Below are positions 21,656 to 62,169 of a DNA stretch of 64,000 bases, in pieces (position 1 is the stretch's first letter; every line of letters starts with the position of its first letter). The stretch covers positions 6,457 to 70,456 of the forward strand of contig NIVC01003903.1 of NCBI GenBank assembly GCA_002269645.1. The letters are read 5' to 3'. A program made the translations under genes and the position numbers. The stretch is from Macrostomum lignano. Taxonomy: Eukaryota. The notes below the pieces were generated by a model, which did no database searches, was not told the origin of the DNA, and worked only from the letters and a program-made list of their open reading frames with translations.

Positions 21656-21767
21656 AGGCTAAATTCCTCAAAGCTCTTCTAGGCTTCGATCCTCAATGCT
21701 ACTCCGTACTTCAAACTCGATATTTGTCCGCTCCATTTCAGACTGCAGACTCGAGCCCTCATCCTCA

Positions 21768-23683
21768 ATGGCCTCAATAAGTGAGGAGCAGCAGCTGCCG
21801 CAGAAGCGCTATTTCCGGCAGCGGGCGCACTGCAACCCGCACTCCCGGCACAGTCTGGACTCGCCAAGCCGGCCGGCTGACGTCGACTGGCCGGGCATCT
21901 TTGCCAGCGATTTCAAAGAAGGCGACGATGTGGAATTCGCCGATGTCGGCTGCGGCTACGGCGGCATGCTGTTCGCCCTGGCCGAGCTGCACCCGGACAG
22001 GCGGGCGCTCGGCATGGAGATTCGGATTAAAGTGTGCGACTATGTGCAAGAGAAGATTCGAGCTATGCGGGCCGCTCATCCTGGTTGCTATGGCAACATT
22101 GCCTGTGTCAGGAGCAACGCTATGAAACAGTTGGTTAATTATTTTCGAAAGGTGCGCGTTCGCAGAGTTTGATAATTCTACACTCAAACAGTAACTTCTG
22201 CCAATTCCTGAGATGCCATTTTTGATCTGAAACTGTTGTCGCATCGTTGTTAGATGTGACGCATTGAGCTGAACCACAACTTGATGCATTGATTCCAGGA
22301 AATGACACCTTAATTCCAGGAAATTACACCTTGATTCCAGGAAATGACACCTTGATTCCAGGAAATGACTTCTTGGTTGCAGGAAATGACACCTTGATTC
22401 CAGGAAATGACACCTTGGTTGCAGGAAATGACACCTTGATTCCAGGAAATGACTTCTTGGTTGCAGGAAATGATACCTTGATTCCAGGAAATGACACCTT
22501 GATTCCAGGAAATGACACCTTGATTCCAGGAAATTACACCTTGATTTCAGGAAATGACACCTTGATTCCAGGAAATGACACCTTGATTCCAGGAAATGAC
22601 ACCTTGATTCCAGGAAATTACGCCTTGATTCCAGGAAATGACACCTTGATTCCAGGAAATTACACCTTGATTCCAGGAAATTACACCTTGATTCCAGGAA
22701 ATGACTTCTTGGTTGCAGGAAATGACACCTTGATTCCAGGAAATTACTTCTTGGTTGCAGGAAATGACACCTTGATTCCAGGAAATTACACCTTGATTCC
22801 AGGAAATTACACCTTGATTCCAGGAAATTACACCTTGATTTCAGGAAATGACACCTTGATTCCAGGAAATTACACCTTGATTCCAGGAAATGACACCTTG
22901 ATTCCAGGAAATTACACCTTGATTCCAGGAAATTACTTCTTGGTTGCAGGAAATGACACCTTGATTCCAGGAAATTACACCTTGATTTCAGGAAATGACA
23001 CCTTGATTCCAGGAAATTACACCTTGATTCCAGGAAATGACACCTTGATTCCAGGAAATTACACCTTGATTCCAGGAAATTACACCTTGATTCCAGGAAA
23101 TTACACCTTGATTTCAGGAAATGACACCTTGATTCCAGGAAATGACACCTTGATTCCAGGAAATGACACCTTGATTCCAGGAAATTACACCTTGATTCCA
23201 GGAAATTACTTCTTGGTTGCAGGAAATGACACCTTGATTCCAGGAAATTACACCTTGATTTCAGGAAATGACACCTTGATTCCAGGAAATTACACCTTGA
23301 TTCCAGGAAATGACACCTTGATTCCAGGAAATTACACCTTGATTCCAGGAAATTACACCTTGATTCCAGGAAATTACACCTTGATTCCAGGAAATTACTT
23401 CTTGGTTGCAGGAAATGACACCTTGATTCCAGGAAATGACACCTTGATTCCAGGAAATAATGTCTCGATTCCAAGCAATGACCAAACTTGATTCCAGAGA
23501 ATAACACCTTGATTACAGCAAATAATATCTTTATTCTTAAGTGAAACAATTTTTGGAAAGAACATCGTAATTCTAAGAAATTCACATCTTAGTTCTAGGA
23601 AATGATGCATTAATTTTCTGAAATGAAACTTGATAATTTAAGCAAAATCCGATTAGAAAATCAGAGGGCCGTTTTACACCCTG

Positions 23684-23733
<50 letters not shown>

Positions 23734-24356
23734 TGTATTTACAGAATTTACAAACGCTTGTATGTTTCTCAGTAGTCAGGGGATTGGGCAGAATCGCCTC
23801 AGTGTTGGTTATGAGACTATGTCGCTGGAAGCGTTGCGCCAGGATATACTTATATGAATTGGGTTAATAAATAATATTTATTGGCCTAGTTAAAGGGTCC
23901 AGAGAGCTTCTTTCTTGGCATCGGAGACTGTTTCTGGTTTCCTTGTACATCTCACTCGTTTCTCATTGGCCATCGCGACCCCGGCAGGGCCAGCTCAGCA
24001 AGCTGCTGTTCCTGTACCCCGATCCGCATTTCAAACGGGCCAAGCACAAATGGCGAATCATCAGCCCGGCCCTGCTAGCCGAATACGCCTACGTGCTGCG
24101 GCCGGGCGGCCGGCTCTACACGGCTACTGACGTGCCCGAACTGCACGACTGGATTGTGCAGCACGCCGCCTGCCATCCGCTGTTCCGCCAACTGTCGCCA
24201 GATGAGCTGGCGAGCGACCCATTGACGCCGCGTCTGGTCGATACGACCGAGGAGGGCCGGAAAGCTCAACGAGAGGGTTGCAGCTGCCTGCCAGCCGTGT
24301 TCGAACGGGTGCCAGATCCGGCAGATACTACTGGCCAAACTGGTGCTGTTCAGTAG
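21768..24356 (+). CDS. METTL1: tRNA (guanine-N7)-methyltransferase METTL1/Trm8, ~250 aa; exons 21768-22151 and 23988-24356
   Basis: PQKRYFRQRAHCNP, EFADVGCGYGG, GMEIRIKV, NAMK, GQLSKLLFLYPDPHFKRAKHKWRIISP. Phase-0 intron AAG|GTGCGC...GGCAG|GGC. ATG 21696 is an alternative start. Confidence 0.95.
22290..23500. repeat. 21-bp minisatellite (TTGATTCCAGGAAATGACACC)n in the METTL1 intron
   Basis: About 57 copies; source of the 603-aa and 400-aa spurious ORFs. Confidence 0.97.
23689..23730. repeat. (GT)n microsatellite
   Basis: Read directly. Confidence 0.95.
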
Positions 24357-28066: not shown

Positions 28067-31000
28067 TTAGCCTTGCCTCAGCCGCTCCAGGGTTTGAGTC
28101 AGCAGCTGCACCTGGCCCTGAAATGCAAATAGTTGCTTGCCTAGGTAACCTTCGAACCTTTGAGCTCAAAAAAGATTCGAGCTCATAAAGATTCGAGCAC
28201 ATGAAGATTCGAACTCATAAAGATTCGAGCTCATGAAGATTCGAGTTCATAAAGATTTAATTTCATGAATATTTGAGCTATAAGGATTCGAGTTCATGAA
28301 GATTTGAATTCATGAAGATTCGATTTCATAAAGATTCGAGCTCATAAAGATTCGAGCTCATGAAGATTCGAGTTCATAAAGATTCGAGCTCATAAAGATT
28401 CGAAGTCATAAAGATTCGAGCTCATAAAGATTCGAAGTCACAAAGATTCGAGCACATAAAGATTCGAAGTCATAAAGATTCGAGCTCACAAAGATTCGAG
28501 CACATGAAGATTCGAGTTCATAAAGATTCGAAGTCATAAAGATTCGAATTCATAAAGATTCGAGCTCACAAAGATTCGAGCTCATAAAGATTCGAAGTCA
28601 TAAAGATTCGAAGTCATAAATATTAGAGCCAATAAAGATTCGAAGTCATAAATATTAGAGCCAATAAAGATTCGAAGTCATAAATATTAGAGCCAATAAA
28701 GATTCGAAGTCATAAATATTAGAGCCAATAAAGATTCACAGTCATGAAGATTCGAGGCTTCGAGCTGATAAAGATTCGAGCTCATAAAGATGAGACAGCA
28801 CAGCTAACAGTAACAACGGCTCACCCTGGAGTGCTTGATCTGCAGTTCGGCCAGCTCCGTGAGATTCTTGTGCAGGTAGGCCACCCAGCGCTGCTTGAAG
28901 CTGATCAGCTCGGCCCTGGCCGCCTCAGAGATGGTGTTGAACGTGTTAAACGCCGCCTCCTGATCAGCCTCGGCCTTCTGCACCGCTTTGCCCTTAGCCC
29001 GGGCCTTTTCTAATTCTTTATTAGCGGACTCAAAGTCGGCCAGAGCTCTGGCCCGCCTGTACAGCAGGTCCTTGGCGCTGTTGCAGTCGGATACGTAATA
29101 GTGCAGAGTGTCCGCCAGCTTCAGGTCGCTGTCCGAGGCTGTCCGGCCTTCCAGCTTGCGGTACCGTTCGCAGAACTCTGCGAATGAGCTCAGAAACCTG
29201 CCGGGTTCGGGGGCGGGCGGACCGTTGGAATTTTAATTGGTTTCTGTGACATTTGAAGGCGATCGCGGTTGACTATGCACGGACAATGACTAGGGGCACC
29301 AGGCTAACCATGAACGTCATCACCCGCAATCCACGACCATGCACATGCAGCCATCACCCGCAATCCACGACCATGCACATGCAGCCATCACCGGCAAACC
29401 ATACACTGGTCAGCACCCACAAATCCAGAAATCGGTCATCACCTGCAAATCATAAATCGGTCATCACCCACAATCCATAAAATGGTCATCACCCACAATC
29501 CATAAAATGGTCATCACCCACAATCCATAAAATGGTCATTACCCACAATACAGAAATCGGTCATCACCCACAATCCATAAAATGGTCATCACCCACAATC
29601 TAGAAACCGGTCATCACCCACAATCCATAAAATGGTCATCACCCACAATCCATAAAATGGTCATCACCCACAATCCATAAAATGGTCATCACCCACAATC
29701 CATAAAATGGTCATTACCCACAATCTAGAAATCGGTCAGCACCCACAATACAGAAATCGGTCATCACCCACAATCCATAAAATGGTCATCACCCACAATC
29801 TAGAAACCGGTCATCACCCACAATCCATAAAATGGTCATCACCCACAATCTAGAAATCGGTCATCACCCACAATCCATAAAATGGTCATCACCCACAATC
29901 CATAAAATGGTCATCACCCACAATCCATAAAATGGTCATCACCCACAATCTAGAAATCGGTCAGCACCCACAATACAGAAATCGGTCATCACCCACAATC
30001 CATAAAATGGTCATCACCCACAATCCATAAAATGGTCATCACCCACAATCCATAAAATGGTCATCACCCACAATCTAGAAATCGGTCAGCACCCACAATA
30101 CAGAAATCGGTCATCACCCACAATCCATAAAATGGTCATCACCCACAATCTAGAAACCGGTCATCACCCACAATCTAGAAACCGGTCATCACCCACAATC
30201 CAGAAATCGGTCAGCACCTACAATCCAGAAATCGGTCAGCGCCCACAATCCAGAAATCGGTCAGCACCCACAATCCAGAAATCGGTCATCACCCACAATC
30301 CAGAAATCGGTCAGCACCCACAATCCAGAAATCGGTCATCACCCACAATCCAGAAATCGGTCATCACACTTAAACTATAAACCGGTTATTACCCACAAAT
30401 CATAAATCGGTCATCACCCTCAAATCATAAATCGGTCCTCACCCTCGAATCATAAATCGGTCATCACCCACAATTCATAAATCGGTCATCACCCTCAAAT
30501 CATAAATCGGTCATCACCCTCAAATCATAAATCGGTCATCACCCTCAAATCATAAATCGGTCATCACCCGCAATTCATAAATCGGACATCACCCACAAAT
30601 CATAAATCGGTCATCACCCGCAAACCATAAATCGGTCATCGCCCACAACAGAGATTAGCCACGGGGCGCTAAACTCACTCGGCCAGCCCATCGTCCCGTT
30701 CAAACTTGGTGCAGGCGGAGGCGCAGGCTGACACGCGAATGTAGGTGTCCGCGGTGGCTGAAACAGGTTGCCAATTCGAAATTGTAATAGATCAATAAAT
30801 CAAACATGCCAGCAATCCAGATGGGAAAATCCGAGCACCTTTATAATGCCGATTCATCCTGTCAGCCTCGGACAGAGCGGACCTCAGATGCCCGTAGAAC
30901 ACGGTGATGAAGCGTTTCTGAGCCTCGAAAAATTCGTCTTTCTCTTTTTGAGTTGACAGAATTGCGTCATCGACAGTTTTCCAGCCGGTCTTGAGGAAGC

Positions 31001-33753
31001 CCTGCACCATCTCGCGCTTGTTCTTGGACCGGACGCTCAGCTGGGTTGGGAAGGGAAGGGAGAATCGGGCATTAACCTAAGGGGGACTCTCTCAGGAGTA
31101 GAAGGGCGATTCTCTCAGGAGTAGAAGGGCGATTCTCTAATGAGTAGAACGGCGATTCTCTAATGAGTAGAAGGGCGATTCTCTCAGGAGTAGAAGGGCG
31201 ATTCTCACGGGAGTAGAAGAGCAACTCTCTCAGGAGTAGAAGGGCGATTCTCTCAGGAGTAGAAGGGCGACTCTCTCAGAAGTAGAAGGGCGATTCTCTC
31301 AGGAGTAGAAGGGCGATTCTCTCAGGAGTAGAAGGGCGATTCTCTCGGGAGTAGAAGGGCGACTCTCTCAGGAGTAGAAGGGCGATTCTCTAATGAGTAG
31401 AACGGCGATTCTCACGGGAGTAGAAGGGCGACTCTCTCAGGAGTAGAAGGGCGATTCTCTCAGGAGTAGAAGGGCGATTCTCTAATGAGTAGAACGGCGA
31501 TTCTCACGGGAGTAGAAGGGAGACTCTCTCAGGAGTAGAAGGGCGATTCTCTCAGGAGTAGAAGGGCGATTCTCACGGGAGTAGAAGGGCGACTCTCTCA
31601 GGAGTAGAAGGGCGACTCTCTCAGGAGTAGAAGGGCGACTCTCTCAGGAGTAGAAGGGCGACTCTCTCAGGAGTAGAAGGGCGATTCTCTCAGGAGTAGA
31701 AGGGCGACTCTCTCAGGAGTAGAAGGGCGATTCTCACGGGAGTAGAAGGGCGACTCTCTCAGGAGTAGAAGGGCGATTCTCTCAGGAGTAGAAGGGCGAT
31801 TCTCACGGGAGTAGAAGGGCGACTCTCTCAGGAGTAGAAGGGCGATTCTCTCAGGAGTAGAAGGGCGATTCTCACGGGAGTAGAAGGGCGACTCTCTCAG
31901 GAGTAGAAGGGCGACTCTCTCAGGAGTAGAAGGGCGATTCTCACGGGAGTAGAAGGGCGACTCTCTCAGGAGTAGAAGGGCGATTCTCTCAGGAGTAGAA
32001 GGGCGATTCTCACGGGAGTAGAAGGGCGACTCTCTCAGGAGTAGAAGGGCGATTCTCTCAGGAGTAGAAGGGCGATTCTCACGGGAGTAGAAGGGCGACT
32101 CTCTCAGGAGTAGAAGGGCGATTCTCTCAGAAGTAGAAGGGCGATTCTCACGGGAGTAGAAGGGCGACTCTCTCAGGAGTAGAAGGGCGACTCTCTCAGG
32201 AGTAGAAGGGCGACTCTCTCAGGAGTAGAATGGCCATTAGAAGAGCCATTCTCAAAGTCCTATTCTCATAATTATCAAGCCGCTCACATCCTTGTCGAAC
32301 TCCAGAAACACCTTGAAAATGTCGTCCTCGCGCAATTTCGGGTGCTCGGCGATGCGCCGCAGAAAGACTTCGTGCATGGCGACCGTTTTCTTGAAGGTGG
32401 CCAGGTACTCGCTAGGAGACACGGCATGGTTGGGATATTGAAACTTGAGTTCTGAATAGAAATCACACAAAAATATATTTCTGTCTTATTTATGACTACT
32501 CCAGACTGTTGTGAGCCCCCACTCTTAGACTGATGACCCTCAACTTTAGACTGTTGTGAGCCCCCACTCTTAGACTGATGACCCCCAACTTTAGACTGTT
32601 GTGAGCCCCCACTCTTAGACTGATGTGACCCCTCCCCCCAAATTTTAGACTGATGTGACCCCAGTCCCCTTAACTCCAGACTGATGTGATTTCCCTAACC
32701 CCAGACTGATGTGACCCCCCTAACTTCAGACTGATGTGACCCCCCTAACCCCAGAATGATGTGACCCCCCTAACCCCAGACTGATGTGACCCCCCTAACC
32801 CCAGACTTATGTGACCCCCCAACTTTTGACTAATGTGACCCCCACTCTAAAAGTGATGTGACTTCCCACTCTTAGACTGATGTGACCCCCCTAACCCCAG
32901 ACTGATATGACCTCCCTAACTCCAGACTGATATGACCCCACCTAACTCCAGACTGATGTGACCCCCCTAACTCCAGACTGATGTGACCCCCCTAACTCCA
33001 GACTGATATGACCCCCCTAACTCCAGACTGATGTGACCCCCCTAACCCCAGACTGATGTGACCCCCCTAACTCCAGACTGATGTGACCCCCCTAACCCCA
33101 GACTGATGTGACCCCCCTAACTTCAGACTGATGTGACCCCCCTAACCCCAGAATGATGTGACCCCCCTAACCCCAGACTGATGTGACCCCCCCAACTTTT
33201 GACTAATGTGACCCCCACTCTAAAAGTGATGTGACTTCCCACTCTTAGACTGATGTGACCCCCCTAACCCCAGACTGATGTGACCCCCCTAACTCCAGAC
33301 TGATGTGACCCCCAACTCCCGACTCACGCCTCCAGCTCGGACTTCATTTTGTCGTACTCCTCCTTGGACATGGAGCTCTCGCCCTCGCCCAGCCTGGCCA
33401 GTTTCTCTCTCGACGAAGAAAAATCCGGCGTCGGCGGCACCGGCGGGATAACGCAGCCGGCGTATTCGACATTCTCGGCCAGGCGGTCGGCCAGCCAGGC
33501 GAATTCTTCGTGTGTTCGAATAACGGAGAACTCTGGCCGGGCGAACCGCGGCACCAGGCTGGTCACGGTGCGGATGGTGAACTTCACGCGCTCCTTTTCG
33601 CTGAGAGCGTCGGAGATTTCGACCCGCAAGTCGTTGCCATTGCCAAGGTCGACACTCTCGGTGCGACCCTGGCGACTGTCGGACAGGTCCACGTGGTGCT
33701 GCTCAAGCTCGTCCTGGCGCGGTTTGGAAATCGATTGTAATTGTTACTAGCAT
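28067..33753 (-). CDS. SNX6: Sorting nexin 5/6/32 family (PX-BAR), ~406 aa; exons 33753-33748 (tentative), 33713-33328, 32411-32288, 31040-30839, 30757-30679, 29197-28825, 28117-28067
   Basis: [79 protein letters not shown] and [13 protein letters not shown] match SNX6. All junctions are GT-AG and phase-consistent; the six firm exons total 1215 nt. Confidence 0.93.
28170..28790. repeat. 16-17-bp minisatellite (AAAGATTCGAGCTCAT)n in the last SNX intron
   Basis: Read directly. Confidence 0.93.
29330..30650. repeat. 25-bp minisatellite (AATCCATAAAATGGTCATCACCCAC)n in an SNX intron
   Basis: 25-bp period (29461 versus 29486); shorter variants at the right end. Confidence 0.95.
31075..32230. repeat. 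23-bp minisatellite (TCTCTCAGGAGTAGAAGGGCGAT)n in an SNX intron
   Basis: Read directly. Confidence 0.96.
32495..33320. repeat. 25-bp minisatellite (GACTGATGTGACCCCCCTAACTCCA)n in an SNX intron
   Basis: 25-bp period (33001 versus 33026). Confidence 0.95.
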
Positions 33754-35938
33754 TCAATCCATGTATACTTTACCAATCGCTATGGGAACAGAAAAATGCT
33801 AAAATATGATGCTTATAGTTGGAATGCTTTTAATTATACATTTTAGAGTCTAATCTGATTATCATGTCAACAAACTTGAAGTAAATACTTTTTTGTGACA
33901 TTTTTAAGATTAGGATAAAAAAATCTTAAACATATTAAGTCTTAAGTCTTAAACATACCCTCTCCCTAAACCTAGACTATTGGAGCCATGAAGGCAATAT
34001 GCATGCAGAAAAATTCCTATACATAAATAGACAAAAAGTATTAACTTTTTATGACATACAGTGCAATTTTGTTGTTATGAGAGAGGTTGAGGAGAAGTGG
34101 GGTACAAATGTTCATTGTTGCAATGTGTCACCCATTGCTTGCTTGCTTGTTCCTTCCTTCCTTTCCCCCTTCTGTTTTGTGTATATATATGAAAGAACCT
34201 GGAAGGTTTTTGTTGCTTTTGTACAGTACTTGCTAAATATATAGGAGCAACTGGCTCTTTGGAGCAACTTTTTATATAGCTCCAATGTAGATTCTTTGCA
34301 GGTCCTACATAAGACTAATTAAACAATGTCCAATGCAAGACAATGAGATAATTAAACAATAGAAAATGTCCAAAAAGGAAAATATATTTAGATAGGCTTA
34401 TTATTTAAAGTATTGAAAATGTAAAAAATATATTTAATTAATGTTGCAATAGTAATAATCTTTGAGATAATTTATATTAAGTATCTATAAGTGTATATAG
34501 CCAAAGACTTGGGCTTTCCAGTTGTAGTTACAAAGTTTAAGTGCCTAGTGCACAGTTGCTTTATTTATATTTTATCCGCATTAGAAAAATGATACCATTG
34601 ATATTTCCAATATGTATCAATGTATATACATTGTTAGATATACCTATAGATTAAGATATATTATCTATAGATATACCAATCTGCATACGTTTTTTTTGTT
34701 TATAAGCCCTAGAATTTTCCAAAATAATATATATCTCCTTAAGAATAGATAGACATATATTAATAAAAAGGGCAAAGGTTAGGCCAAAATATAATAGTAT
34801 AATGGGGTTTGAGTTCTTGTATATCATTTAGTGTGCCATTGTTGTAAGTCTTTTTGCAAAGTAATTATTGGTATTTAATTATTTTATTTAATTGTACATC
34901 TGTATACATTGTTTGACATGTTAAGCAGATTAAGTTTAGACTATTTTGTTAAAATCTTAATACTCCAATTTCAAATGACTATTAAATCATTTTGCATTTT
35001 CTTGCAAGCTGCTTGTTTAGTTTGTTGCTCATTGCTTTTGGCTTTGTGCTGGCTCTGATATTTAATAGATAAGTATACTAAATAGTTTGCAGATATTTGA
35101 CTATTTTCAATAGCTCCCTATAATTTGCCTAGTTCACTTTTACTTTCTCATATATATAAATCCTAATCGACTGCTATACAACTCATCAACATCAACAAAA
35201 GAAAAGTAGGCTTAATAAAATTGTCACAATAGTCAATATATTTAAAATTATATAAAAATATTTAGGGCCCAACTTTTAGTATCATTTCAATTATATAATA
35301 TTATAATAAAATTAAGCCTACTTAACACCTTAATATCTTTAAATTAGCAATTTACAATTAAAGATTTATGCAACTAAAAATTTATAAATCCTAAGGAGAG
35401 TCAAAGCCCAATAATAAGGCAAAAAGAATAGTCCTTTATTTGGCAAATAAAAGGAACATATCGTACCTAGGCCTAATGCCAAAAATTGATCCTTTTTAAT
35501 CTCTACTAGGCCTATATGTTTAGGCTTAACAAGGCATAAGCCAAAGGTCTTAATCTTATTTTTAAAATCCTAGTTTACTAAGGCATATTTAGTATCAATA
35601 ATTTTGATTCTATCTAACCCCAATTTTAACCTATTTTATATTGCATTAGGCCCTAGACTAAATGCAACATTGCAATTGTGCAAAAAATGCAAACATATCA
35701 AACAAAGCTAGGCCTAACTTTCTATTTTGTAAATGTAAAGCCTAAGGTTAAGCCTTGCTTTTGGCCTTGGAATTTAGCATGCCACTTTTTTAAATTAGGC
35801 CTAGGCCTAGGCCTAATGCTAGATTGCTTTTGCAAAAACATAGGCCTACCTGACCTTGGTAACAATAGGATATTTAACCTTGAGCATGGCTAGAAAAAAG
35901 CAATTGTTTTACTATTATTATATACATATATGCTCAAC

Positions 35939-36080
35939 CTTGGGAATCACCCGGCCATTTCTATTGGCAACACACACATGTAAGTCACTATTGGCTGAGA
36001 GCAATCACGTGACTACTATTCCATCCAATAGCAACTTACATATGTGTGTTGCCAATAGAAATGGCCAGGCGAATCCCTAG
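35939..36080. mobile_element. ~140-bp fold-back element / MITE
   Basis: GGCCATTTCTATTGGCAACACACACATGTAAGT pairs with ACTTACATATGTGTGTTGCCAATAGAAATGGCC; outer CTTGGGA/TCCCTAG; short centre. Confidence 0.7.
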
Positions 36081-36103
36081 ATTGCACCTAAGCATGATTA
36101 TAT

Positions 36104-37790
36104 TGAGGCAGAAGGCCTTTTAGTTTCAATAGATGGAATGGCAGCAAAGATTTTGCGCTGCTTTGCGCGTATGCTTATATTACAAACAGCGCGAGATTAT
36201 AGAGGGGTCTAGGGAGGTGCGCACATGTGGCGTGGCGTGATTGGCTGGGGGGGGGTTTCCAGTGCGGCTGCACTGGTGCTGCCGGTCGCGTAGACTGGCC
36301 GCCACACAGCTCCCCCCAGCACCGAGCTAGACCACGAACGTCGGGGTAGCCGAGGCAGCGAGAGCGCCAAGGAGCGGGCGCCAAAGGCGGCGGGGGCGCG
36401 AGGCGGGCGCCGAAGGCAGCAGCAGGGCGCCAGGCGGGAGCCGAAGGCGGCAGGGGCGCGAGGCGGGTGCCGAAGGCGGCGGGGCGCCGAAGGCAGCAGC
36501 AGGGCGCCAGGCGGGCGCCAAAAGCAGCAGGGCGCCAGGCGGGCGCCGATAGCAGCAGTGCACCAGGCGGGCGCCGATGGCAGCAGGTCTCCGAGCGGGC
36601 GCCGAGCGGGCGCCAAGCGGGCGCCGAAGGCAGCAGGGTGCCAGGCGGGCGCCAGACGGGCGCCGAAGGCGGCGGGGCGCCAGGCGGGCGCCGAAGGCAG
36701 CAGCAGGGCGCCAGGCGGGCGCCGAAGGCAGCAGGGCGCCAGGCGGGCGCCGAAGGCAGCAGGGCGCCAGGCGGGCGCCGATAGCAGCCAGCGGTGCTAA
36801 CCTAGAAGTAGCTGCAGCGTGTGGCGCTGGTTGGTCCAATGCGGGGGCCGAAAAGCGAGACCCCAGGAGCTACCGGGGGGCGGGCTGACTGGGCCGATTT
36901 GTGCTGCTGGGCTGCGGTGCTGCTGCTAGCCTAGCGTCCCCAGCCTCTGTGCAGGAGCATCGATCCGGCTCACGGCGGCAACTGACTGTCAATTGCCTCT
37001 GGTGTGGTCCGGCCGCGCGCCCCTGCTGCCTTCGGCGCCCGCCTGGCGCCCTGCTGCTGCCTTTGGCGCCCGCCTGGCGCCCTGCTGCTGCCTTCTGCGC
37101 CCGTCTGGCGCCCTGCTGCTGCCATCGGCGCCCTGCTGCCTTCGGCGCCCGCCTGGTGCCCTGCTGCTGCCATTGGCGCCCTGCTGCCTTCGGCGCCCGC
37201 CTGGCGCCCTGCTGCTGCCTTTGGTGCCCGCCTGGCGCCCTGCTGCTGCCTTCGGCGCCCGCCTGGCGCCCTGCTGCTGCCTTCGGCGCCCGCCCGGCGC
37301 CTGCTTGGCGAGCTGCTGCCATCGGCGCCTGCTCAGCGACCTGCTGCCATTGGCGCCCGCTCAGCGACCTGCTGCCATTGGCGCCTGCTTGGCGACCTGC
37401 TGCCACTCCACGGCTGCGGTGCTGTTGTGCTGCGGTGCTGCCGTTGCAGTCGGCCAAGGCGGTTGGCTACCAGGACCGCACAGGGCCGACCAGGTAGGCC
37501 TAGCATTCCGCGCTGGGAGTCGGGCTCACCAATGAGGCGGAAGGCCTTTTAGTTTCAATAGATGGAATGGCAGCAAAGATTTTGCACTGCTTTGTGCGTA
37601 TATTTATATTACAAACAGTGCGAGATTATAGAGGGGTCTAGGGAGGTGCGCACATGTGGCGTGGCGTGACCCTCGTAGCGAGCCGGCTAGCGCGGTGCGC
37701 CACCACCCCACCTCAGCTAGACAAAGGTTGGCGGGGGGGTTTCCAGTGCGGCTGCACTGGTGCTGCTAGTCGCGTAGTCTGGCCGCCACA
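36104..37790 (-). mobile_element. Non-autonomous LTR retroelement (TRIM/LARD-like) with an internal inverted GC-rich repeat
   Basis: Direct repeats 36104-36306 and 37533-37790 with TG...CA ends; 4-bp flanking ATAT/ATAT; minus-strand PBS TGGTGAGCCCGAC (37531-37519); PPT GGGGGGAG before the other LTR; no gag/pol. Confidence 0.75.
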
Positions 37791-40455
37791 ATATATTATT
37801 AATAAATAGTCAATAGAAAAAAAGTATTGAAGTATAGGCCTAGTGAAATAAAAATACTACTTATTTATTAATACAAAGTAATAAAAAGATCCACCCTTAT
37901 TCTTAACAATATTAGGCCTATCAATTGACAAATTAATTAGATAAGAATAGAGAGGCTCTTTATAAATACTCTTTTATAAATATTACTGAGCTGTTTTTTT
38001 AAGGTTAGAAATTTAGTTGCCAGCTGGCCCTTGGGGCTCAAAATCCAGTTGCCAATGGCTATTTTTGGTTGCCCATTGGCAACTTGCCAAATTCTTGAGG
38101 ATAGATATTTCCGAGGCTCATTAAACATGTATGCACTGTATGACTATGGGAATGAGACTGTCTGGGACTTGTTATTGACATTGTCAATTTTCGCAACTTA
38201 TTATTTGCCATAACTTAGATTCATATAGGCCCTAGCACTTTTATTACACTTGCAAAATCATTTTCTGGAAGTGGCAACTGGCACAAAGAAATGAAGTTGC
38301 CAGATTGGCCTCTGATGCCAAAAATCCAGTTGCCAATGAGATTTTCAAGGGGCAAAAAACCCCATATGGTCCAAAAATAAACCTAGCTAGGCCTACTGAG
38401 GCTCTTTTTTAGGCCTAATCTTCATTTATAAAAAAAGAGCAATTGTACATAAATGTACACAGATCATGAGTGATGTACTAATGCAATGTGTAGGGCCTAC
38501 TAATGAGAATATTATGTCGTTATAATTCAAAGTTCTGCTTAAAATAGCCTAGGGCCTATAGGGATTCAGTCATTCAGCAAATGAGTGAATACAGGTTACT
38601 AGGGTAAAAGCACTAGGCCCCTAGGTTACATAGACATTCGTTTGGTTTAGTATAGTAGTACTGGACTAACACCGATATGACTACACAGAAAAAATCGATA
38701 ACAGCTGTCGATTAAATTAAAAAAACTATCAATATTTCCCGTCCGCTATTAAAACAATCTGTAGCTACTATTAGCTAGCTAGCAACATTACTTACAAGCA
38801 TACTTTATTACAAGTTGTGCAAGATGTAAGCGTAGTTTATTATTTGCTTTATAGAGTCAGAGTCACGTCTACCAAAGCAGTACCAACGGTCCAAGTTAAA
38901 TATTTAGTTTAGCCAAGCAAGTCAAAGTGAAAATAGTAAGGTCAGGGTCAGGCAGTCTTTAAATGTACACAAGTCAAGTGCTATACAATGTACGCCTAGC
39001 ATGTAAATCAGATTCAGTAAAATTGAAAACGGCAGACGGCAGTAGATTAAAAACAACGATTACCTAAAGTTTTTAAATAAGCCGCGAAATTTTGATCAAA
39101 TGCGGTTATCAAAGTTTTAAATGCTCGAGCCCATTTCAATTGTTAATATTTTTGTTAAAACAGTCAGTATAATCAATTCAGGGCTTTGACATCAGCCAGC
39201 TGATAATACAATGTCGGGGGGGGGGGGCGATTTGAACGATCATCAATTATGCCTCTAAGGCATCAACAATTAATTTGATTCCTTTTGTCGACGAAAAAGC
39301 ATTAGAATCATTTACAGTAAATGCATACATCTAATTTCATTTCTAGTATATATCAGGACAGCAGACATTTTAAATTTTAAGTATAGGGGAATTAGTGGAT
39401 GAAATAACTTTCATGTAGGTAGTAGATAACTGCTATAACTGTGCAGGGCACAAATTAAGAAGCCAAACGGGTTCTTCTTGACAAATAACCGAATAGCAAG
39501 AAGTCCCCCATTCGGGAACAAAAAGCGGCACCGCGCTTATATTAATTTACGTTTTTAGCAGTAAGTGTATACCATGGCCTCTCACATTTAAGCAAAATCA
39601 ATTTTTAGATTTTCCTACATAAAGCCGTTGAAAAGCCATAGTTTGTATTGATTGATGCACAAAGATAGAATTATCGCAGCTCAACCAATTGGGCATGCAG
39701 GCACGCGCGACTGAACGTACGCAGCTCTGTGTTTACAGCTATATAAGGCTATGAGATTGAGTGGACCATGACTAGAACAACGAAAACAGAATACGTTGTC
39801 AGCCTTCACGCAGTCAAGCGATCGAGTCATGAGAGGCAGAAAACGACGTCACAGGGCGCGTTAGAGAATAGCTGCTCAAGCTGCAGGGACTGCGCATGGC
39901 TAGGCCAAGTGAACGGCGAGATTCTATTCTCTGCCCCCTTTTCTCTCCTCTCTTCCCTCTTTCCTCCAAGAAAAACACCTACATCTAAATCAGAACTGTA
40001 ATTTGATGAATAGATTAATATCAATGAAAAGCTGATAGAAAATGCTTATAGCCAAAGCTAGCGCGATCGCGGCTTGTAAATTACATTAACAGACGCGGCG
40101 GAGTGGCCGGCAAAGAAGGACCGGCATGCATATTATATGTGCGCACTACTGAGGCCATGCAGAGAGGCGCGGTAGACAGGTAAAAATTAGAGAATTCTTC
40201 TCTCAGAGAAGAGCCAACCGTGAAAAGGAGATATATAAAAGAAACAATGCACTTGTTGAGTATTTCATTAAATATATTTTCTTTCATAATTTTCACGAAC
40301 GAACGTGCAGTAGTGATTTGTAAACGATCAAGCAAAACACAATCCATCAAACCTAAATTAAGCTATGATACAATAGCTATTTTATGATTTTATAGATGCA
40401 GCATATTATAATTAGTTTTGCAGGGCATACGATTATTTCAATTGAACTTGTTGCA

Positions 40456-41439
40456 TTAGGAATTAAAGACGAATCGCCGGAAACTGAACGTCAATCGACG
40501 CAGTCTGGCCGCCAGCTTCCCGTCTGCGGCTGCTGCTTGTTGCTGCTGAGGATGCAGCAGCTGAGGCGGTTGCAGCGCTGACGACGGAGGCGGCGGAGCT
40601 CGCCGTTTTGATGCCCGCCTGTAGTCCTCGCTGCTGGCTGAGCGTCGAACTGTGGCCACTGCAGTGATCGGTGTCGGGGGCGGCGGTCGAGGCGGTGGAG
40701 TGGGCAATCGCGGTGGCGGAGGTCGCTGCGGCGGCAGCTGCCGCGATGCAGATGACTCTTGGGTTGGCGAAGTCTCTAACTGAGGCGCAGTCTGCAGACG
40801 CGGCACCGGTCCGGCTTGGGGCGGAAGCAGGTCGTTCAGCAATGCGGGAAGTTGTATGCGACGCCAATCCTGCTGACCATCGGCGACAGACAATCCGGCG
40901 ATCAGGTCGGCTAGAACTGCTTCAACTGCATTCAGCCGGGCAGCGTCACTTCGCTCGGGACTTGTCAATGCCGTGGAAAGCGCGCCTGGATCACTTCCTG
41001 TGCTTGAATTTGCAACACCGGAAGCAGCACCGGAGGCAACACCGGAAGCAACTTCAGAAGTAATTCCGGAAGCAACACCGGAAGTAAAATCTGAAGAAGT
41101 ATCTATAGAAATAACATCAGAAGTATTCGTGCCTTCAGAAGCAACACCAGAAGCGTAGATTGCCGCTCTACGCCGCTCGACCAAGCCAGCCAGGCAGACA
41201 TTTCTGGGCAGCTCCAGTCCCGCAGGACAGCGGCCTCGGCAGAGCGGGCAGGCGTCACCGCCGGGCTGCTGACGCCAGTCGGTCAGGCAGGCGCAGCAGA
41301 AGCTGTGGCCGCAGGGCGTCACCCGTGGATCCTCAAACAGGCAGTCGCAGATGCTGCAGGTGAGATCCGCGTCATCGTCATCATTGGATAGATCTGCTCT
41401 GACTCGCTCAGAAGTTCCTAATCCGAGTTGTGACATCAT
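40456..41439 (-). CDS. Single-exon RING-HC (C3HC4) protein, 327 aa, probable E3 ubiquitin ligase
   Basis: CSIC-x11-CGHSFCCAC-x11-CPLC; then ASGV repeats, a Pro-rich region and KRRAPPPP. Acceptor ACACAG|GCAATG before the ATG. Confidence 0.85.
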   Translation of the reverse strand: MMSQLGLGTSERVRADLSNDDDDADLTCSICDCLFEDPRVTPCGHSFCCACLTDWRQQPGGDACPLCRGRCPAGLELPRNVCLAGLVERRRAAIYASGVASEGTNTSDVISIDTSSDFTSGVASGITSEVASGVASGAASGVANSSTGSDPGALSTALTSPERSDAARLNAVEAVLADLIAGLSVADGQQDWRRIQLPALLNDLLPPQAGPVPRLQTAPQLETSPTQESSASRQLPPQRPPPPRLPTPPPRPPPPTPITAVATVRRSASSEDYRRASKRRAPPPPSSALQPPQLLHPQQQQAAAADGKLAARLRRLTFSFRRFVFNS

Positions 41440-43114
41440 TGCCTGTGTGTGTGTGGAGGATTACATTTGCATACTCTTGTTAGGTACTCATAATAAACCT
41501 ATGTGTATAAGTACGTATATTTTTATAAAAAATAGTGTCTTCATTGAGTATACATATATAATCCATAGACATAAAGATTTTCCGTGACAATATTTGCAAG
41601 ACTTTGTAAGTCTTTATAAGTCATTATAAATGTCTATGGTTTATACGAGATTACACATTTTCATAAATCCCTCGGGCCTTCGGCCCTCGTACTTTAGTCG
41701 CCCATGGTATCGAACTTTAGTCGAATCCGGTGGGGTTCTATTTAGTGCTAAAAAGTAATTCGTCTATGGCTGAAATCGCATTCTGGTGATTGAATAGCAA
41801 AGAAGTTCATAGGATTGTACATGCGACATAAAACGAGAAAACAGACAGAACGGTAATACACTGTAGAATAATGGGTGAAAAAAGTAAGTGTAAATTCTCG
41901 CTTCATATTAACCTGCCATTACTTTACGTTGGTCTAGTAAATCTGCATTATAATCACAGTTCCCAGGATAGTTTTAGTACGAGTATATCATGGAAGTTGT
42001 ATAAGGCTTGGCCACAGACTATGCTTTTAAAGGAGTCGGCCTCGCACTTTTTAACCACATGATTATAGCGAGTTGCCGCTGACAGTCAGTAGCTCAGTAG
42101 TAGTGTCGGGACATGGACAGATTAATTTTTTGCGCTCTTTACAAAATCATGCAGCTGGAATTTAAGGTCGATGTGCGTCTAAGCTACTAAAATTTGACTC
42201 GTGATTTTTGCATAGAGGTTAGCATACACGAATCTCATTTTTATTTAATTATATCTAATAATACAGACCATCAAGTTCAACCAATAGACGAGATCAATCC
42301 TACACGACGCTGGAGAGGGTGGGGGAGGGGTAAGAGGGAAGAGGGGATTTTGAAAATTTCTAAAAATGAATCTCAATCCGCACCTATAATACAACACAGG
42401 AGATTTTGCCTTGGCATCAAATGAGAATGCTTGCGATCACAGAGTGGCACACCTTAGGTTTATGAATTTTGGTCTGAGCTCATGTGTAATGTAGCTTACA
42501 CAGGTACGAGCCTGTGTAAGGAAATTGATAGCTACATATACGGGTAAAGCTAGAGTTTAAATGTTACTACGATGTCTGTCGCACTAGAAAGACTAAAATC
42601 TATAGCTAATGACAAAGCCACAAGCACATTGACATCTTGTAATCTATTTCACTTACCATTAGTTGACTAAATTTTGATAGGATTAACTGAATTAAGACGC
42701 TACAGGTTTAGCTCAAGCGGACCAGTATTAGATTCGATTCCACGCGGTAGTGCAAGCGGCGTCACAAGGCCCATGTCGAGCTACATGTACAGGTATAACA
42801 GCTATAGTAATCAGTATTTAACTCCCTACAGCTTTGGCCAGAACAGACGGGGTTAAAGAATCGATAAATATTTCTCAGAATTTTCAGCTGTGTTTTCTCT
42901 GCTAAATGACAAAAGTGCGTTTAGTTAAACTGTACTCAGGGGAATTGTGTACAATCCACTATCTGTCTGAGCTGCATGTACAATTATGTAGCACGGCTGC
43001 ACAGAAGGGCTAAAGGACGACATTTCTACATTTTTCGCTTTTAAAACTAAAAAAACACTTGACGTCAATTGCTACAGATGGGGCGATTAGCGGCATTTAC
43101 ACTCATTTTGTGCT

Positions 43115-45015
43115 CACACTAATAGCTCAGTCAGCGATGTGCTCACATTACTAACTTACAGTCAATGATGTGCTCACACTAATAGCTTACAGTGAGTGAT
43201 GTGCTCACACTAATAGCTTACAGTGAGTGATGTGCTCACACTAATAGCTTACAGTGAGTGATGTGCTCACACTAATAGCTTACAGTGAGTGATGTGCTCA
43301 CACTAATAGCTTACAGTGAGTGATGTGCTCACACTAATAGCTTACAGTCAATGATGTGATCACACTAATAGCTTACAGTCAATGATGTGCTCACACTAAT
43401 AGCTTACAGTCAGTGATGTGCTCACACTAATAGCTTACAGTCAGTGATGTGCTCACACTAATAGCTTACAGTGAGTGATGTGCTCACACTAATAGCTTAC
43501 AGTGAGTGAAGTGCTCACACTAATAGCTTACAGTCAGTGATGTGCTCACACTAATAGCTTACAGTGAGTGATTTGCTCACACTAATAGCTTACAGTGAGT
43601 GATGTGCTCACACTAATAGCTTACAGTGAGTGATGTGCTCACACTAATAGCTTACAGTGAGTGATGTGCTCACACTAATAGCTTACAGTCAATGATGTGA
43701 TCACACTAATAGCTTACAGTCAATGATGTGCTCACACTAATAGCTTACAGTGAGTGATGTGCTCACACTAATAGCTTACAGTCAATGATGTGCTCACACT
43801 AATAGCTTACAGTGAGTGATGTGCTCACACTAATAGCTTACAGTCAATGATGTGCTCACACTAATAGCTTACAGTCAATGATGTGATCACACTAATAGCT
43901 TACAGTGAGTGATGTGCTCACACTAATAGCTTACAGTGAGTGATGTGCTCACACTAATAGCTTACAGTGAGTGATGTGCTCACACTAATAGCTTACAGTC
44001 AATGATGTGATCACACTAATAGCTTACAGTCAATGATGTGCTCACACTAATAGCTTACAGTCAGTGATGTGCTCACACTAATAGCTTACAGTCAGTGATG
44101 TGCTCACACTAATAGCTTACAGTGAGTGATGTGCTCACACTAATAGCTTACAGTGAGTGATGTGCTCACACTAATAGCTTACAGTGAGTGATGTGCTCAC
44201 ACTAATAGCTTACAGTGAGTGATGTGCTCACACTAATAGCTTACAGTCAGTGATGTGCTCACACTAATAGCTTACAGTGAGTGATGTGCTCACACTAATA
44301 GCTTACAGTCAATGATGTGCTCACACTAATAGCTTACAGTCAGTGATGTGCTCACACTAATAGCTTACAGTGAGTGATGTGCTCACACTAATAGCTTACA
44401 GTCAATGATGTGATCACACTAATAGCTTACAGTGAGTGATGTGCTCACACTAATAGCTTACAGTGAGTGATGTGCTCACACTAATAGCTTACAGTGAGTG
44501 ATGTGCTCACACTAATAGCTTACAGTCAATGATGTGCTCACACTAATAGCTTACAGTCAGTGATGTGCTCACACTAATAGCTTACAGTCAGTGATGTGCT
44601 CACACTAATAGCTTACAGTCAGTGATGTGCTCACACTAATAGCTTACAGTCAGTGATGTGCTCACACTAATAGCTTACAGTGAGTGATGTGCTCACACTA
44701 ATAGCTTACAGTGAGTGATGTGCTCACACTAATAGCTTACAGTGTCAGTGATGTGCTCACACTAATAGCTCACAGTCAGCGATGTGCTCACACTAATAGC
44801 TTACAGTGTCAGTGATGTGCTCACACTAATAGCTTACAGTGTCAGTGATGTGCTCACACTAATAGCTTACAGTCAGTGATGTGCTCACACTAATAGCTCA
44901 CAGTGTCAGTGATGTGCTCACACTAATAGCTTACAGTGTCAGTGATGTGCTCACACTAATAGCTCACAGTGTCAGTGATGTGCTCACACTAATAGCTCAC
45001 AGTGTCAGTGATGTG
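43115..45015. repeat. 31-bp minisatellite (GATGTGCTCACACTAATAGCTTACAGTGAGT)n, ~60 copies
   Basis: Constant core with variant junctions GTGAGT/GTCAGT/GTCAAT/GTGTCAGT. Confidence 0.97.
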
Positions 45016-45281
45016 CAGGGCATGCCCAATTCACTGATTAAAATGAAAGACAACCAGGACTCACGTTAGCTACATAAATGTACAACACAGAGCATACGAA
45101 AGAGCAAAAGCATATTAAAATTTGTATATTTGTGTTATTTTGGCAAATTTTAAAAACATCAACACATTAAAATTCTACAGAAATTTTCAGAAAGCATAGG
45201 CTAAGAGACTTAACAGTAATTGAGATTTGAAGATTCAGTTCCAGATAGACATGGATCATGGATTGCGGATCTAATGCCGAA

Positions 45282-53690: not shown

Positions 53691-54758
53691 TCAGTCGGCC
53701 GCTGTTGTATGTACCTTCAGATTCAGGCGACGGTATGGGGGTCATCACACTGTCCCATTTCATTGCAGCTAGTCGTCTCAGCCAAGAACCGGAAGATATT
53801 GACGATGAGGCGGACTCCATTCTACCGCTTCCGAAATGGCTCAGAATGCTTAGAGCAGCTCTGGATTGGTTTTGGAACCAATGGAAGACGTCCTACTTGG
53901 AGTCTCTGCGCGAGAAAGCCCTAAAGGATCAACCTAACCACCGCCTACCAAATGTTGGTGAAGTAGTTCTTCTGGCAGGTGAAGCTCAACAACCAAGACT
54001 CAAGTGGAAATTGGGTATTGTCGAGGAAGTTCGTCCTGGCCGTGATGGTGCTATCCGGTCGGTTCTTTGCATTGCGGGTGCTGGGAGTTCTTTGGGAACG
54101 GGTGAGACAGCCAGTCCAGTCGTTAATTCCTTTAGAGGTTCAATCCTAAGACCGTTATTTTTTTGTCCTTTCCCACGACTCTCGAATTTGTTTGCTAACT
54201 TTTTTGACAGCCTCTTGCAAAATTTTGTAATGGGAAAAGGTTTGTTTTCTGTTTTTGAGATAATTCTCTTGGTGGTGGACAATGTTACGCGTCATTATTC
54301 GTCATTTTTCCATTTACGTTGTAATATATTTTTTCCTCATCTATCATGCTCACATACACTTAAACTTGGCTCTAACAGTTTTCTGTTCTCTGCTGACTGT
54401 TTCACTTACAACAACAAACCAGTCCTTGTCTGTTATGCTAAGATTTTTTTCCTTTTTCATTGTTTTTTTTGCAACAAGTTTGAATGTAATGTAGTTTTGC
54501 TGCTCCGAATTTAAAAAATCAAATGATAAATCATTTGGGGGGAGTGTCGAAAAATGAGTTGGCCTAGGCTAGCCGCTTATTTCATCTAATTTATTTTCTC
54601 TTATTTTTCACTGTATGCACAATGTATATCTCCGCCAACACCCCAAAATTCGTTAAGTTAGAAAATATAAAAGCTGGATTCTGGGCAGCGACCGCCCTAA
54701 CTTCATTTTCTTTATCGCCAGTCAAAATCAATTATTGGTTTATTTTATTATAGGAACA
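53690..54758 (+). mobile_element. 3' fragment of a BEL/Pao LTR retrotransposon (integrase C-terminus, PPT, 3' LTR 54545-54758)
   Basis: SRPLLYV, FWNQWKTSYLESLRE, PNVGEVVLL, RLKWKLGIVEEVRPGRDGAIRSV and, after a frameshift, QPVQSLIPLEV are Pao integrase C-terminal (DUF5641-type) motifs. PPT GGGGGGAG at 54537-54544 followed by TG...AACA. Confidence 0.85.
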
Positions 54759-56322
54759 GGGATTAAGACAGACATACTTAAAAATTGTCCAATAATTTAT
54801 GATACTGCCCAAGTTATTACAATCTTTTTGCATCTTTCCACTGATGGCTGTAGCTTGTACTCTAATTCTCCCTCTTCTTTGTGGCCTGTTCAAGCTCAAA
54901 TTTTAAATCTTCCAACATTTTTGCATTTTCAGCCAGAAAACTTCTTAATTTTTTCTCTCTTTCTTGGTGCAAAGAAGCCTAACTGGAAAACATTTCTAGA
55001 AGACCATCTGGCTTCAGTTTTTGAAAAAAACATTCTGTTTTACTATTCAAAACAGGCCTATGCATTTTCGTGTTAAACTCTTTTCGGCTACTTTTGATCT
55101 TCCTGCCTTGGCTAGCATACTAAACCATAAGCAATTTAATGGCGAGTTTGGTTGCCTTTACTGTGAAAATCCCAGTAGTACTGTTAAAGTCGGCCATGGA
55201 TCCGCACGCAAGTATTCTGAGCCTCATTTATCTACTCCAGTTTCGAATGCTGTTTATTTATCACGAGTTCAACTAGTCTGTCTCTCTGGTGAGAAGAGCC
55301 TTTTTGGTATTAAGGGTGATTCTGTTCTTAGGAAGTATGTGCGCATTCCAAAGAATATTTTGCTTGATTCATTGCACTTTCTTTATGAAAATTGTTGTGG
55401 CACTCTAATGAAATATATGTTTGATGGTTCCTACCAACAACTGAGTTGCTACCTTGGGCAAAGTCTGCCCTTCTTTAATGATACTCTTAAAAGAGTCAGC
55501 GTGCCTAAGTCAGTAACAGTATCATTTTGTCTAGAGCTTCGCTCTTCGTGGAAAGCCAAGGATTACATGTTCGCTGCAATGTATCTATTGCCTATATTTG
55601 CTTTCCATTGCTTCAGTAGGAAAAATCAGGCATGCGCCATTGCTTTGCTTTCTTTTTCTCTTGTTTGTCATGTAGCAAATTCTGTAGACTGTGAGCACTA
55701 CTTGGCGCTTCTCAATAAAGTAATTCAACACTTTATGTCAACTTTAGGAACTGCATTTGATGCCAATGTATACACAATTAATTTTCATCTCCTGTGTCAT
55801 TTGCCTGAACAGCTTCTCAATTTTGGTCCTCTAACAGGATACTCTATGTTCTCATTTGAGAGTCAATTTTCAACGGTAAAGAATTATATTCAAAGGAATC
55901 GATTCCATATCAAGCAAATATGCGAAAAGCTCATTCTGCAAAAATGTTGCACTTTCTGTCTTAAGGAGGGAGCTGCTGCTCAATCTAACAGCTGCATTTT
56001 TGAGCTGCTCACTTCTAAGTTTAGAATTTTATCAAGCAGTCCTTCCGCCTGCTGGCGATTTCTATCCACTTATGCAATAGTGCAAAACAATCGTCTCTTT
56101 TATGCTACTTCTTATTCGAAATTGCCCCCTACTCGGTCATGTATTGTGCAGTTGAAAGATGGTTGTTTCTGCAAAGTAGTTTGTTTTCTGAATGGCACCG
56201 ATATTTTAGCTGATGTAATTTTTTTAGACATCTGCAATTTACAAGACTTTTTAGGTAAAGTGGCTCGCTTGATGAAGAGTAGATAAATAAAGGTACATAT
56301 CAACATGAAGTGTTGTTTGAGT

Positions 56323-56368
56323 TGCCGATGCATTTCGTCCATTTGCATTGGGACATCGTCAGGGTCTT
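56323..56368 (-). ncRNA. Second hammerhead motif copy in the inverted pLTR arm
   Basis: Reverse complement reads GACCCTGACGATGTCCCAATGCAAATGGACGAAATGCATCGG. Confidence 0.6.
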
Positions 56369-56996
56369 TTTATTGAGAAACAATTTGAACGAATATTCAG
56401 TATATATAGATAGTTGAGAGTAACAAGAGTAGTTGAATTGAGTTTTTAATTGATGGTTTAAAACTTGTACATAGTAATCAATTTTTGATACAGTATTGGT
56501 TGGGTAAAGTGCATATCAGTTTCAAGCCAGTCCGGTCATTGACAAATCAGCTAAAAAATTCTGAGTTGACGGCTAGCCCCACCCATCGCAAGTTGGTTGT
56601 TTAACGTGGGCTGTTTGGTCTTAATGTACATGTTTAATGTACATCTTTAATGTACATTAGTTAATGTACATCTTTAATGATAAAGGCTATTGATTTTTGT
56701 AATAGAGATCACATGCTCTGCCTATTAGAAGCCCTGTACATTAAGACCAAACAGCCCACGTTAAATAACCAACTTGCGATGGGTGGGGCTAGCCGTCAAC
56801 TCAGAATTTTTTAGCTGATTTGTCAATGACCGGACTGGCTTGAAACTGATATGCACTTTACCCAACCAATACTGTATCAAAAATTGATTACTATGTACAA
56901 GTTTTAAACCATCAATTAAAAACTCAATTCAACTACTCTTGTTACTCTCAACTATCTATATATACTGAATATTCGTTCAAATTGTTTCTCAATAAA

Positions 56997-57042
56997 AAGA
57001 CCCTGACGATGTCCTAATGCAAATGGACGAAATGCATCGGCG
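56997..57042 (+). ncRNA. Minimal type I hammerhead ribozyme motif in the Penelope pLTR
   Basis: CTGACGA-T-GTCC(10-nt loop)GGAC-GAAA-TGCA-TC; palindromic stem III ATGCAT; predicted cut after C57038; stem I has only 2 bp (CC/GG). Confidence 0.6.
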
Positions 57043-61089: not shown

Positions 61090-62169
61090 TAAAAAAAGAC
61101 TAATATATAAACTAGTTTTATAAACTGTATAGTACATATAACTATGGTCTAATTATATTTGACCACAAATCTACATGTATCTTTTTAAAAGCAAATAAGT
61201 TGCATTGTTGTTTGTTTCTTTTAAAACACCCTTTTGTATTCTGCATCATAAATAGTATGCAAGTACAAAGCTAATAAAAAATGCTAAGCTATCAACACAT
61301 AAAATCAAGCCTAAACTCTATTTACCAACTTTAGAAGTTTAGTTAGTTAAAATTCATTATGAAAATATAAGATACAGGGAAAATATTGAGTAGTCCCTGA
61401 TAGGATAATTATTTAAAAGGTATTTTTTCAGTTACTGTGTAAATAACACTGGCAATATTTACATGGTAGGCCCTACTGTGCAAATAAATAACAACTGCTA
61501 TTATAAATACCATTACCACTGTCCTTAATATTAAAATAAATGGTTTACTTGGATTGCTTTGCTAAAGTCAAAATATCAAAGAGAAGTCAAAGAGAAATAG
61601 CAATAGCTTAGAGTAAAGCATTTTATTATTAGATTTCAAATTGTAAGATATTGAATTATACTTAAAAAAATATTAGACTTATCACTTAGTCTTAGACTGC
61701 TGCCTAGCTAACATTAACAACTAATGAAAAAATCTATTTGTTCAGTCCCCAATCAGTTTGTCATTACTCATAATCTGCCATTTTGTCATCTTAATAATTT
61801 AGCATTTTTACTAACTGAAGACCAGAAGAGCGTCACAAAAGCAGTTTGATCGTGTGTACTCCAGACTCCGGATTGTATACATGTACGCCGGAAAATTCCG
61901 GCGTACAGAGGGACCTAGATTACACATTGGCGTACAACTTGGCGTACAAAGGCGCCTGGCGTGCCCTCTTGGCGTACGGCGTATAGAGATTGCCGAGACC
62001 AGCAGGTGGACCAAAAGTTCGAGTCCCAACAATCAATCTACATAATTAGCATACAAAAATGATTAAGTTTGCATTTGGCATAGTTTCCATGTACATAGTT
62101 ACAGTAAATATACAGTAGCTAAATTTTGATCAGAAAGAATGGCTGGCCCTTTACGAAAAAAACGGAAAA

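Follow-up and report, generated by a model that had tools for sequence, protein, structure and literature searches.

A putative protein-less LTR retroelement whose body is an inverted-minisatellite fold-back

The closest described systems

LARDs are several kilobases long, with kilobase-sized LTRs and a non-coding interior that is often structured or repeat-rich. Animal TRIMs with LTRs of ~200 bp and short G-rich polypurine tracts (PPTs) have been documented (PMC6934838; also PMC3532108 and PMC4558846), among them biv-TRIM, with repeats of 202-218 bp and the 7-bp PPT GGGGAGA (PMC6934838). Retrozymes and Cassandra are small LTR elements as well, carrying an RNA module (hammerhead and 5S, respectively) in place of genes (PMC4918200, PMC7215508), and in maize Sireviruses the hairpin-forming palindromes of the LTRs have been linked to host siRNA targeting (PMC4728375). 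Foldback DNA transposons have a unique centre between long inverted arms, which are built from short tandem repeats (PMC3573991, PMC4079207), and the hpRNA loci that give rise to endo-siRNAs yield transcripts able to fold into long, imperfect dsRNA hairpins, which Dicer processes (PMC5392987, PMC8728187).

Here we describe a 1,687-bp element (positions 36104-37790) from a 64-kb window, the whole stretch of DNA that was analysed, which falls between TRIMs and LARDs in size class. Like TRIMs, it has terminal direct repeats in the 100-260-bp range, with a putative primer binding site (PBS) and a PPT-like tract bounding a non-coding interior, carries neither gag nor pol and would require a partner acting in trans. 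Unlike TRIMs, it has an interior of 1,226 bp between the LTRs instead of tens to a few hundred bp, this interior is made of inverted minisatellite arrays, and the total length lies above the strict TRIM limit (less than ~1 kb, with a short interior; PMC6934838). The non-coding, repeat-rich interior between LTRs is shared with LARDs, although the element is much smaller. Its body has the long inverted arms of short tandem repeats and the unique centre of foldback DNA transposons; however, the arms of those transposons are termini flanked by target-site duplications (TSDs), whereas here the arms are internal and bounded by direct LTRs, and no TSD of at least 7 bp occurs at the arm ends. As in hpRNA loci, a long inverted repeat capable of forming dsRNA is present (275 inter-arm pairs in the predicted fold), so that by analogy a hairpin serving as a Dicer substrate is plausible, but the arms are a low-complexity repeat without another target in the window. 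With Sireviruses the element shares hairpin-forming sequence inside an LTR retrotransposon; the Sirevirus palindromes, by contrast, are short, lie in the LTRs and belong to autonomous plant elements, whereas here arms of 400 bp occupy the body of a non-autonomous animal element. Identity with a retrozyme or with Cassandra was rejected, as no Rfam family, hammerhead and 5S included, matches the element even at E<=1, and no tRNA was detected in it either. From the one copy seen, we regard the locus as belonging to a known kind, the non-autonomous LTR retroelements, with an unusual fold-back body, and as a curiosity rather than a demonstrated new design.

Borders, LTRs and priming signals

A GC-rich block with sharp borders, the element is surrounded by AT-rich non-coding DNA, with a sorting-nexin-like exon on one side and a RING-finger gene on the other, and it reads on the minus strand (Table 1). 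In 300-bp windows, GC content is 73-77% within the block versus 23-38% on either side, and the jumps in composition coincide exactly with the borders of the terminal direct repeats. Within the element, GC content (66-81%) is uniform over the arms, the spacer and the unique segments. The predicted empty-site sequence reads ...GATTATAT|ATTATTAA.... Compositional contrast is extreme across the window as a whole: the AT-rich non-coding DNA (for example, 34104-36103) has 30% GC and a CpG o/e of 0.15, versus 59-71% GC and a CpG o/e of 0.84-1.1 in exons (for example, 2631-4580, 15714-16400 and 40456-41439) and mobile elements. A hairpin of ~150 bp (35935-36084), with 63-nt arms that are 86% complementary and a 24-nt loop, lies 20 bp to the left of the element; since its matches to Rfam, on both strands, are only to generic miRNA-precursor models and fall below threshold, it resembles a palindrome of the MITE type.

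Table 1 Features of the element and its immediate borders (window coordinates).
Feature	Position	Strand	Description
Left TSD copy	36100-36103		ATAT; abuts LTR outer end
3' LTR	36104-36306	-	203 bp; sense starts TGTGGCGG, ends CTGCCTCA; carries TATAAT
Unique segment	36307-36373	-	67 nt, left array to 3' LTR; contains ACGTCGGGGT; no similarity elsewhere in window
PPT-like tract	36310-36317	-	GGGGGGAG (G6AG), 8 nt; 3 nt upstream of 3' LTR
Left arm	36374-36788	+	~14 units of GGGCGCCAGGCGGGCGCCGAAGGCAGCA(+GCA); 81% GC
Spacer (fold-back loop)	36789-37020		232 nt, unique; 66% GC; non-coding
Right arm	37021-37405	-	~14 units, reverse complement of the GGGCGCCAGGCGGGCGCCGAAGGCAGCA repeat; G-rich 5' arm of sense RNA
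Unique leader	37406-37518	-	PBS to right arm; just a 23-nt GCAGCACCGCAGC motif in common with spacer
PBS-like site	37519-37531	-	TGGTGAGCCCGAC; 1 nt past 5' LTR end
5' LTR	37533-37790	-	258 bp; TATAAT 37630-37625, TATAAA 37608-37603
Right TSD copy	37791-37794		ATAT; abuts LTR outer end

Aligned globally, the two LTRs agree at 191 sites and disagree at 9 (95.5% identity over the sites aligned), and they are further set apart by two indels, of 58 bp and 3 bp. Changes from CpG to TpG or CpA account for six of the nine mismatches, as would be expected of ageing LTRs through the usual decay of duplicated sequence in a methylating genome. The 58-bp segment (37670-37727) is present in the 5' LTR and absent from the 3' LTR; a candidate likeness of this segment to the PPT region was dismissed, as it scores at chance level only (score 17). 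The LTR ends have the TG..CA form (TGTGGCGG...CCGCCTCA, with the terminus reading CCTCA), and the 5' LTR has a terminal inverted repeat, in which the opening 8 nt agree at seven of eight positions with the closing 8 taken as reverse complement. In an orientation that agrees with the PBS and PPT, TATA motifs are found 70-95 nt upstream of the LTR end; TATAAT occurs in both LTRs. Sampling of the real AT-rich flanks puts at 0.7% the chance that 4 bp at fixed borders match as they do on the two sides.

The PBS-like site matches 12 of the 13 nt of a tRNA-Trp-type PBS, for which we assume a textbook reference rather than the tRNA of the host, and it is the sole match with at most one mismatch on both strands of the window. 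Complementarity to the textbook tRNA-Trp ends after these 13 nt. No tRNA genes were found in the window, and a literature string search with the PBS sequence returned unrelated primer sequences only. On the sense strand, the 3' LTR is preceded by ...GGTGCTGGGGGGAGCTG|TGTGG, with CTG separating the PPT from the LTR. A second PBS-like piece in the sense strand of the element, formed by ACGTCGGGGT (36338-36347, + strand), lies ~20 nt upstream of the PPT and matches at 10 of 10 positions what we take to be part of the tRNA-Trp 3' end; it may be due to chance or be a relic of an older rearrangement. Self-priming, by pairing of the PBS with the LTR transcript, was considered and rejected, the best match by eye being a gapped 9 of 13 that lies upstream of the TATA motifs.

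As a single feature, the 4-bp TSD, all A/T in AT-rich DNA, is weak, and so is the PPT, short at 8 nt and not flush with the LTR; the candidate PBS, judged from its sequence and position, is strong evidence for a retroelement. Taken together with the composition borders, the PBS, PPT and TSD are by far best explained by the insertion of a retroelement. An earlier note on this DNA had proposed TG..CA LTRs, an ATAT TSD, a 12/13-nt match to a tRNA-Trp-type PBS and a PPT. The LTRs were recovered as direct repeats, the TSD stands at both outer LTR ends, and the PBS lies 1 nt from the LTR as a site unique in the window; the PPT has its counterpart in a G6AG tract, albeit one of just 8 nt that is 3 nt away from the LTR.

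The inverted minisatellite and its predicted RNA

The body consists of one GC-rich minisatellite with a 28/31-bp unit, arranged as two inverted blocks of 415 and 385 bp around the 232-bp spacer. The left arm is G-rich on the + strand and hence corresponds to the C-rich 3' arm of the sense RNA. Outside the right arm, positions 37406-37532 form a 127-nt stretch with the PBS at its end. Individual arrays are heterogeneous, with 74-94% matches between units (TRF). Eight ORFs of 80-198 aa span the arrays on both strands, and none contains a Pfam domain at E<=0.1; they are open because the GC-rich repeats lack stop codons. The absence of retroelement proteins asserted in the earlier note is thus borne out, as are its two inverted arrays and the unique loop between them, with array borders corrected from 36360-36790 and 37015-37400 to those of Table 1 and the spacer from ~220 to 232 nt. 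Overall, its description of a non-autonomous LTR element with an inverted-minisatellite fold-back body holds on every feature that can be tested in sequence.

Since the same minisatellite is present as two opposed blocks, a transcript of the body would form a long hairpin, and since both arms are the same repeat, they could pair in any register. The predicted minimum free energy (MFE) of the internal region is -926.9 kcal/mol for the sense RNA and -996.0 kcal/mol for the antisense RNA, versus -700.7 +/- 9.7 kcal/mol for dinucleotide shuffles (z = -23 for the real fold) and -595.5 kcal/mol when the right arm is flipped so that both arrays are direct. In the MFE structure, 275 nt of one arm are paired to the other in 24 helices, the longest unbroken ones measuring 48, 38, 31 and 29 bp. 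By comparison with the shuffles and the flipped arm, the predicted fold-back is far beyond chance, in agreement with the long stable dsRNA stem that the earlier note had anticipated. Each arm alone reaches -178 to -228 kcal/mol; single arms fold well because the unit holds two GGCGCC palindromes, and such local hairpins would be expected to compete with the long-range stem during transcription.

The two arms have an identical 28-nt consensus, of which each contains three perfect copies. Several rare variants also recur in both: AGAC in place of AGGC, units starting with GGTC, a short unit of 17 nt and the +GCA form. Clearly, the arms derive from one array. Their later histories differ. When one arm is aligned collinearly to the other in reverse complement, the sites aligned are 90% identical, but 101 gap columns have to be introduced, and the order of units is not significantly mirrored between the arms: 404 of 1,000 permutations score at least as high as the observed arrangement. 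That permutation result led us to discard a mirrored order, the mark of a one-step inverted duplication; the unmirrored order and the 101 gap columns point instead to independent unit turnover in each arm since the split. Each arm also has an expansion of its own: the three outermost units on the right are GGTCGC..AATGG units, and the outer left end has a 57-bp higher-order repeat. Comparison of the arms revealed neither an ordered nor a compensatory pattern, and no sign of selection maintaining their pairing. We see roughly equal chances that the fold-back predates this insertion and that it does not.

Minisatellites are abundant in the surrounding DNA. The window contains more than 20 others, with units of 16-65 bp and many exceeding 1 kb (for example, 22289-23523, 29386-30648, 31079-32238 and 43109-45016), so that array growth appears to be common, a general trait of this genome. 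One array, of 59 copies of a 21-bp unit, lies between the ORFs 21696-22172 and 23943-24356, which by eye look like exons of a tRNA m7G-methyltransferase; the array between them is probably intronic. Another, a 32-bp minisatellite with 13 copies and 94% matches (4583-5078), is located at the end of a long kinase ORF (2631-5102) and, being open in all three frames, is probably intronic and not coding.

Relatives, rival explanations and meaning

Self-BLAST revealed no second copy of the LTRs or of the unique segments in the 64-kb window. Neither an ORF of the element nor the RING ORF was on record in an exact look-up, and searches of two protein libraries with the element ORFs recovered no homologue. 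Exact-pattern scans, with probes taken from the LTR/PBS junction, two LTR cores and the repeat unit, gave zero hits in metagenomes (LTR/PBS junction and 28-mer repeat), in viral contigs (three probes) and in prokaryote genomes (two probes), all of them collections from which the host lineage is absent. This lack of relatives is probably explained by the host, an animal and probably a spiralian, belonging to a lineage that these collections do not represent. The window encodes a two-kinase-domain protein, a UPRT-like protein, a methylpurine glycosylase (MPG), a SNARE and a RING protein; the best matches of the MPG, from molluscs and a brachiopod, are just 50-56% identical, and an identity of at most 56% implies that the host lineage is lacking in the protein database.

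Several other mobile elements occupy the window and are unrelated to the element. At ~62000-64000 lies the 5' part of an LTR retroelement, with a gag that carries a CCHC zinc knuckle, the DTG motif of a protease and, near 62508, a PBS-like TTGGCGACCACGCC. It runs past the window end; it was considered as the autonomous partner and rejected, its PBS being different and its LTR showing no similarity. An ORF at 53705-54514 contains DUF5641, which we take to be the C-terminal domain of BEL/Pao-type integrases, and seems to be the integrase tail of a mobile-element remnant; a transposase-like ORF at 55021-56286, with the transposase-associated DUF4218, also looks like a remnant of a mobile element. 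Both are surrounded by AT-rich DNA. A foldback element (56279-57086) sits right at the stop of the DUF4218 ORF; its arms are 97% complementary, and its loop of 104 nt contains repeats resembling TTAATGTACATC.

The account that we favour, with moderate confidence and on the anatomy of this one locus, is a single old insertion of a protein-less LTR retrotransposon whose fold-back is a by-product. Under this account, an autonomous element would have copied the RNA in trans, with reverse transcription primed at the PBS by a tRNA-Trp-like tRNA ending in ...GTCGGGCTCACCA or close to it, plus-strand synthesis starting from the G-rich tract, and integration that duplicated 4 bp of the target. Part of the array would have been inverted, or duplicated inversely, through template switching in reverse transcription or a replication fold-back, after which each arm would have gained and lost units separately. 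We regard the fold-back accordingly formed as a structural by-product, not as a selected device. Any transcript of the body would be an imperfect hairpin with arms of ~400 nt and should make a good Dicer substrate; the likeliest activity, if there is any, would be as a source of small RNAs directed at the repeat itself, which we consider possible but rather doubtful.

Three rival explanations can be envisioned. In one, which builds on the proposal of the earlier note, the fold-back is conserved across a family of elements, as an RNA hairpin used for packaging or dimerisation, as a mobile source of endo-siRNAs or a decoy, or as an inhibitor of the partner in trans. The predicted hairpin is real and very stable, the arms show unit turnover, and array heterogeneity (74-94% matches between units) exceeds the 4.5% divergence of the LTRs, which is compatible with an inversion before insertion; yet minisatellites evolve faster than unique DNA, so that the heterogeneity of the arms does not date the inversion. 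A published retroviral experiment bears on both sides of the question: replication was severely impaired when the genome carried a hairpin of 300 bp, and truncated hairpins were selected, yet the hairpin-bearing genome was a strong inhibitor of the wild type in trans (PMC1819390). Given the replication defect, copying of an RNA with arms of 400 nt may be difficult, and efficient spread is doubtful; by analogy, a hard-to-copy hairpin may fit an origin after insertion and may equally call into question whether the structure ever transposed. Given the inhibition in trans, an element acting as an inhibitor of its helper stays a minority reading. The single copy seen in the window, the many pairing registers open to arms made of the same repeat and the missing ordered or compensatory pattern further weigh against conservation across a family, which we think unlikely; we hold to be no likelier its specific form, an LTR family with an inherited hairpin RNA with arms of ~400 nt that spreads an hpRNA/siRNA-generating or partner-inhibiting module.

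Alternatively, a foldback-type DNA transposon (compare Drosophila FB, Galileo and Tetris) could have inserted into a small TRIM-like LTR element. The body does resemble such transposons in its inverted arrays of ~30-bp units around a unique loop (PMC4079207, PMC3573991), and the window does contain another foldback element, with 352-nt arms (56279-57086). The arms, however, lack a flanking target duplication, which leaves a nested insertion unsupported: the best 7-bp matches are 50 bp off the arm ends and go with no inverted termini. Moreover, little unique internal sequence would be left once the arms are removed, and the GC content does not change between arms, spacer and unique segments. 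We consider this origin improbable. Even less credible to us is the proposal that the locus is no transposon at all but a local GC-rich minisatellite island, with direct repeats created by segmental duplication and LTR hallmarks arising by coincidence. This proposal would accommodate the single known copy, the wealth of minisatellites in the genome and the little weight that the PPT and TSD carry one by one; against it stand six independent hallmarks at the exact repeat borders, the jump in composition and a correctly placed PBS match that is unique in 128 kb (2 x 64 kb).

Read as a single old insertion, the locus cleanly exemplifies a small LTR element that lacks proteins, from a poorly sampled animal lineage. 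It shows that a minisatellite within a mobile element can turn into a long inverted repeat, which is useful for repeat annotation and involves no new mechanism. Were the fold-back common to many copies, an LTR element could carry and spread a long dsRNA-forming module, and this would bear on the origin of hairpin siRNA loci and on the interplay between retroelement parasites and their helpers.
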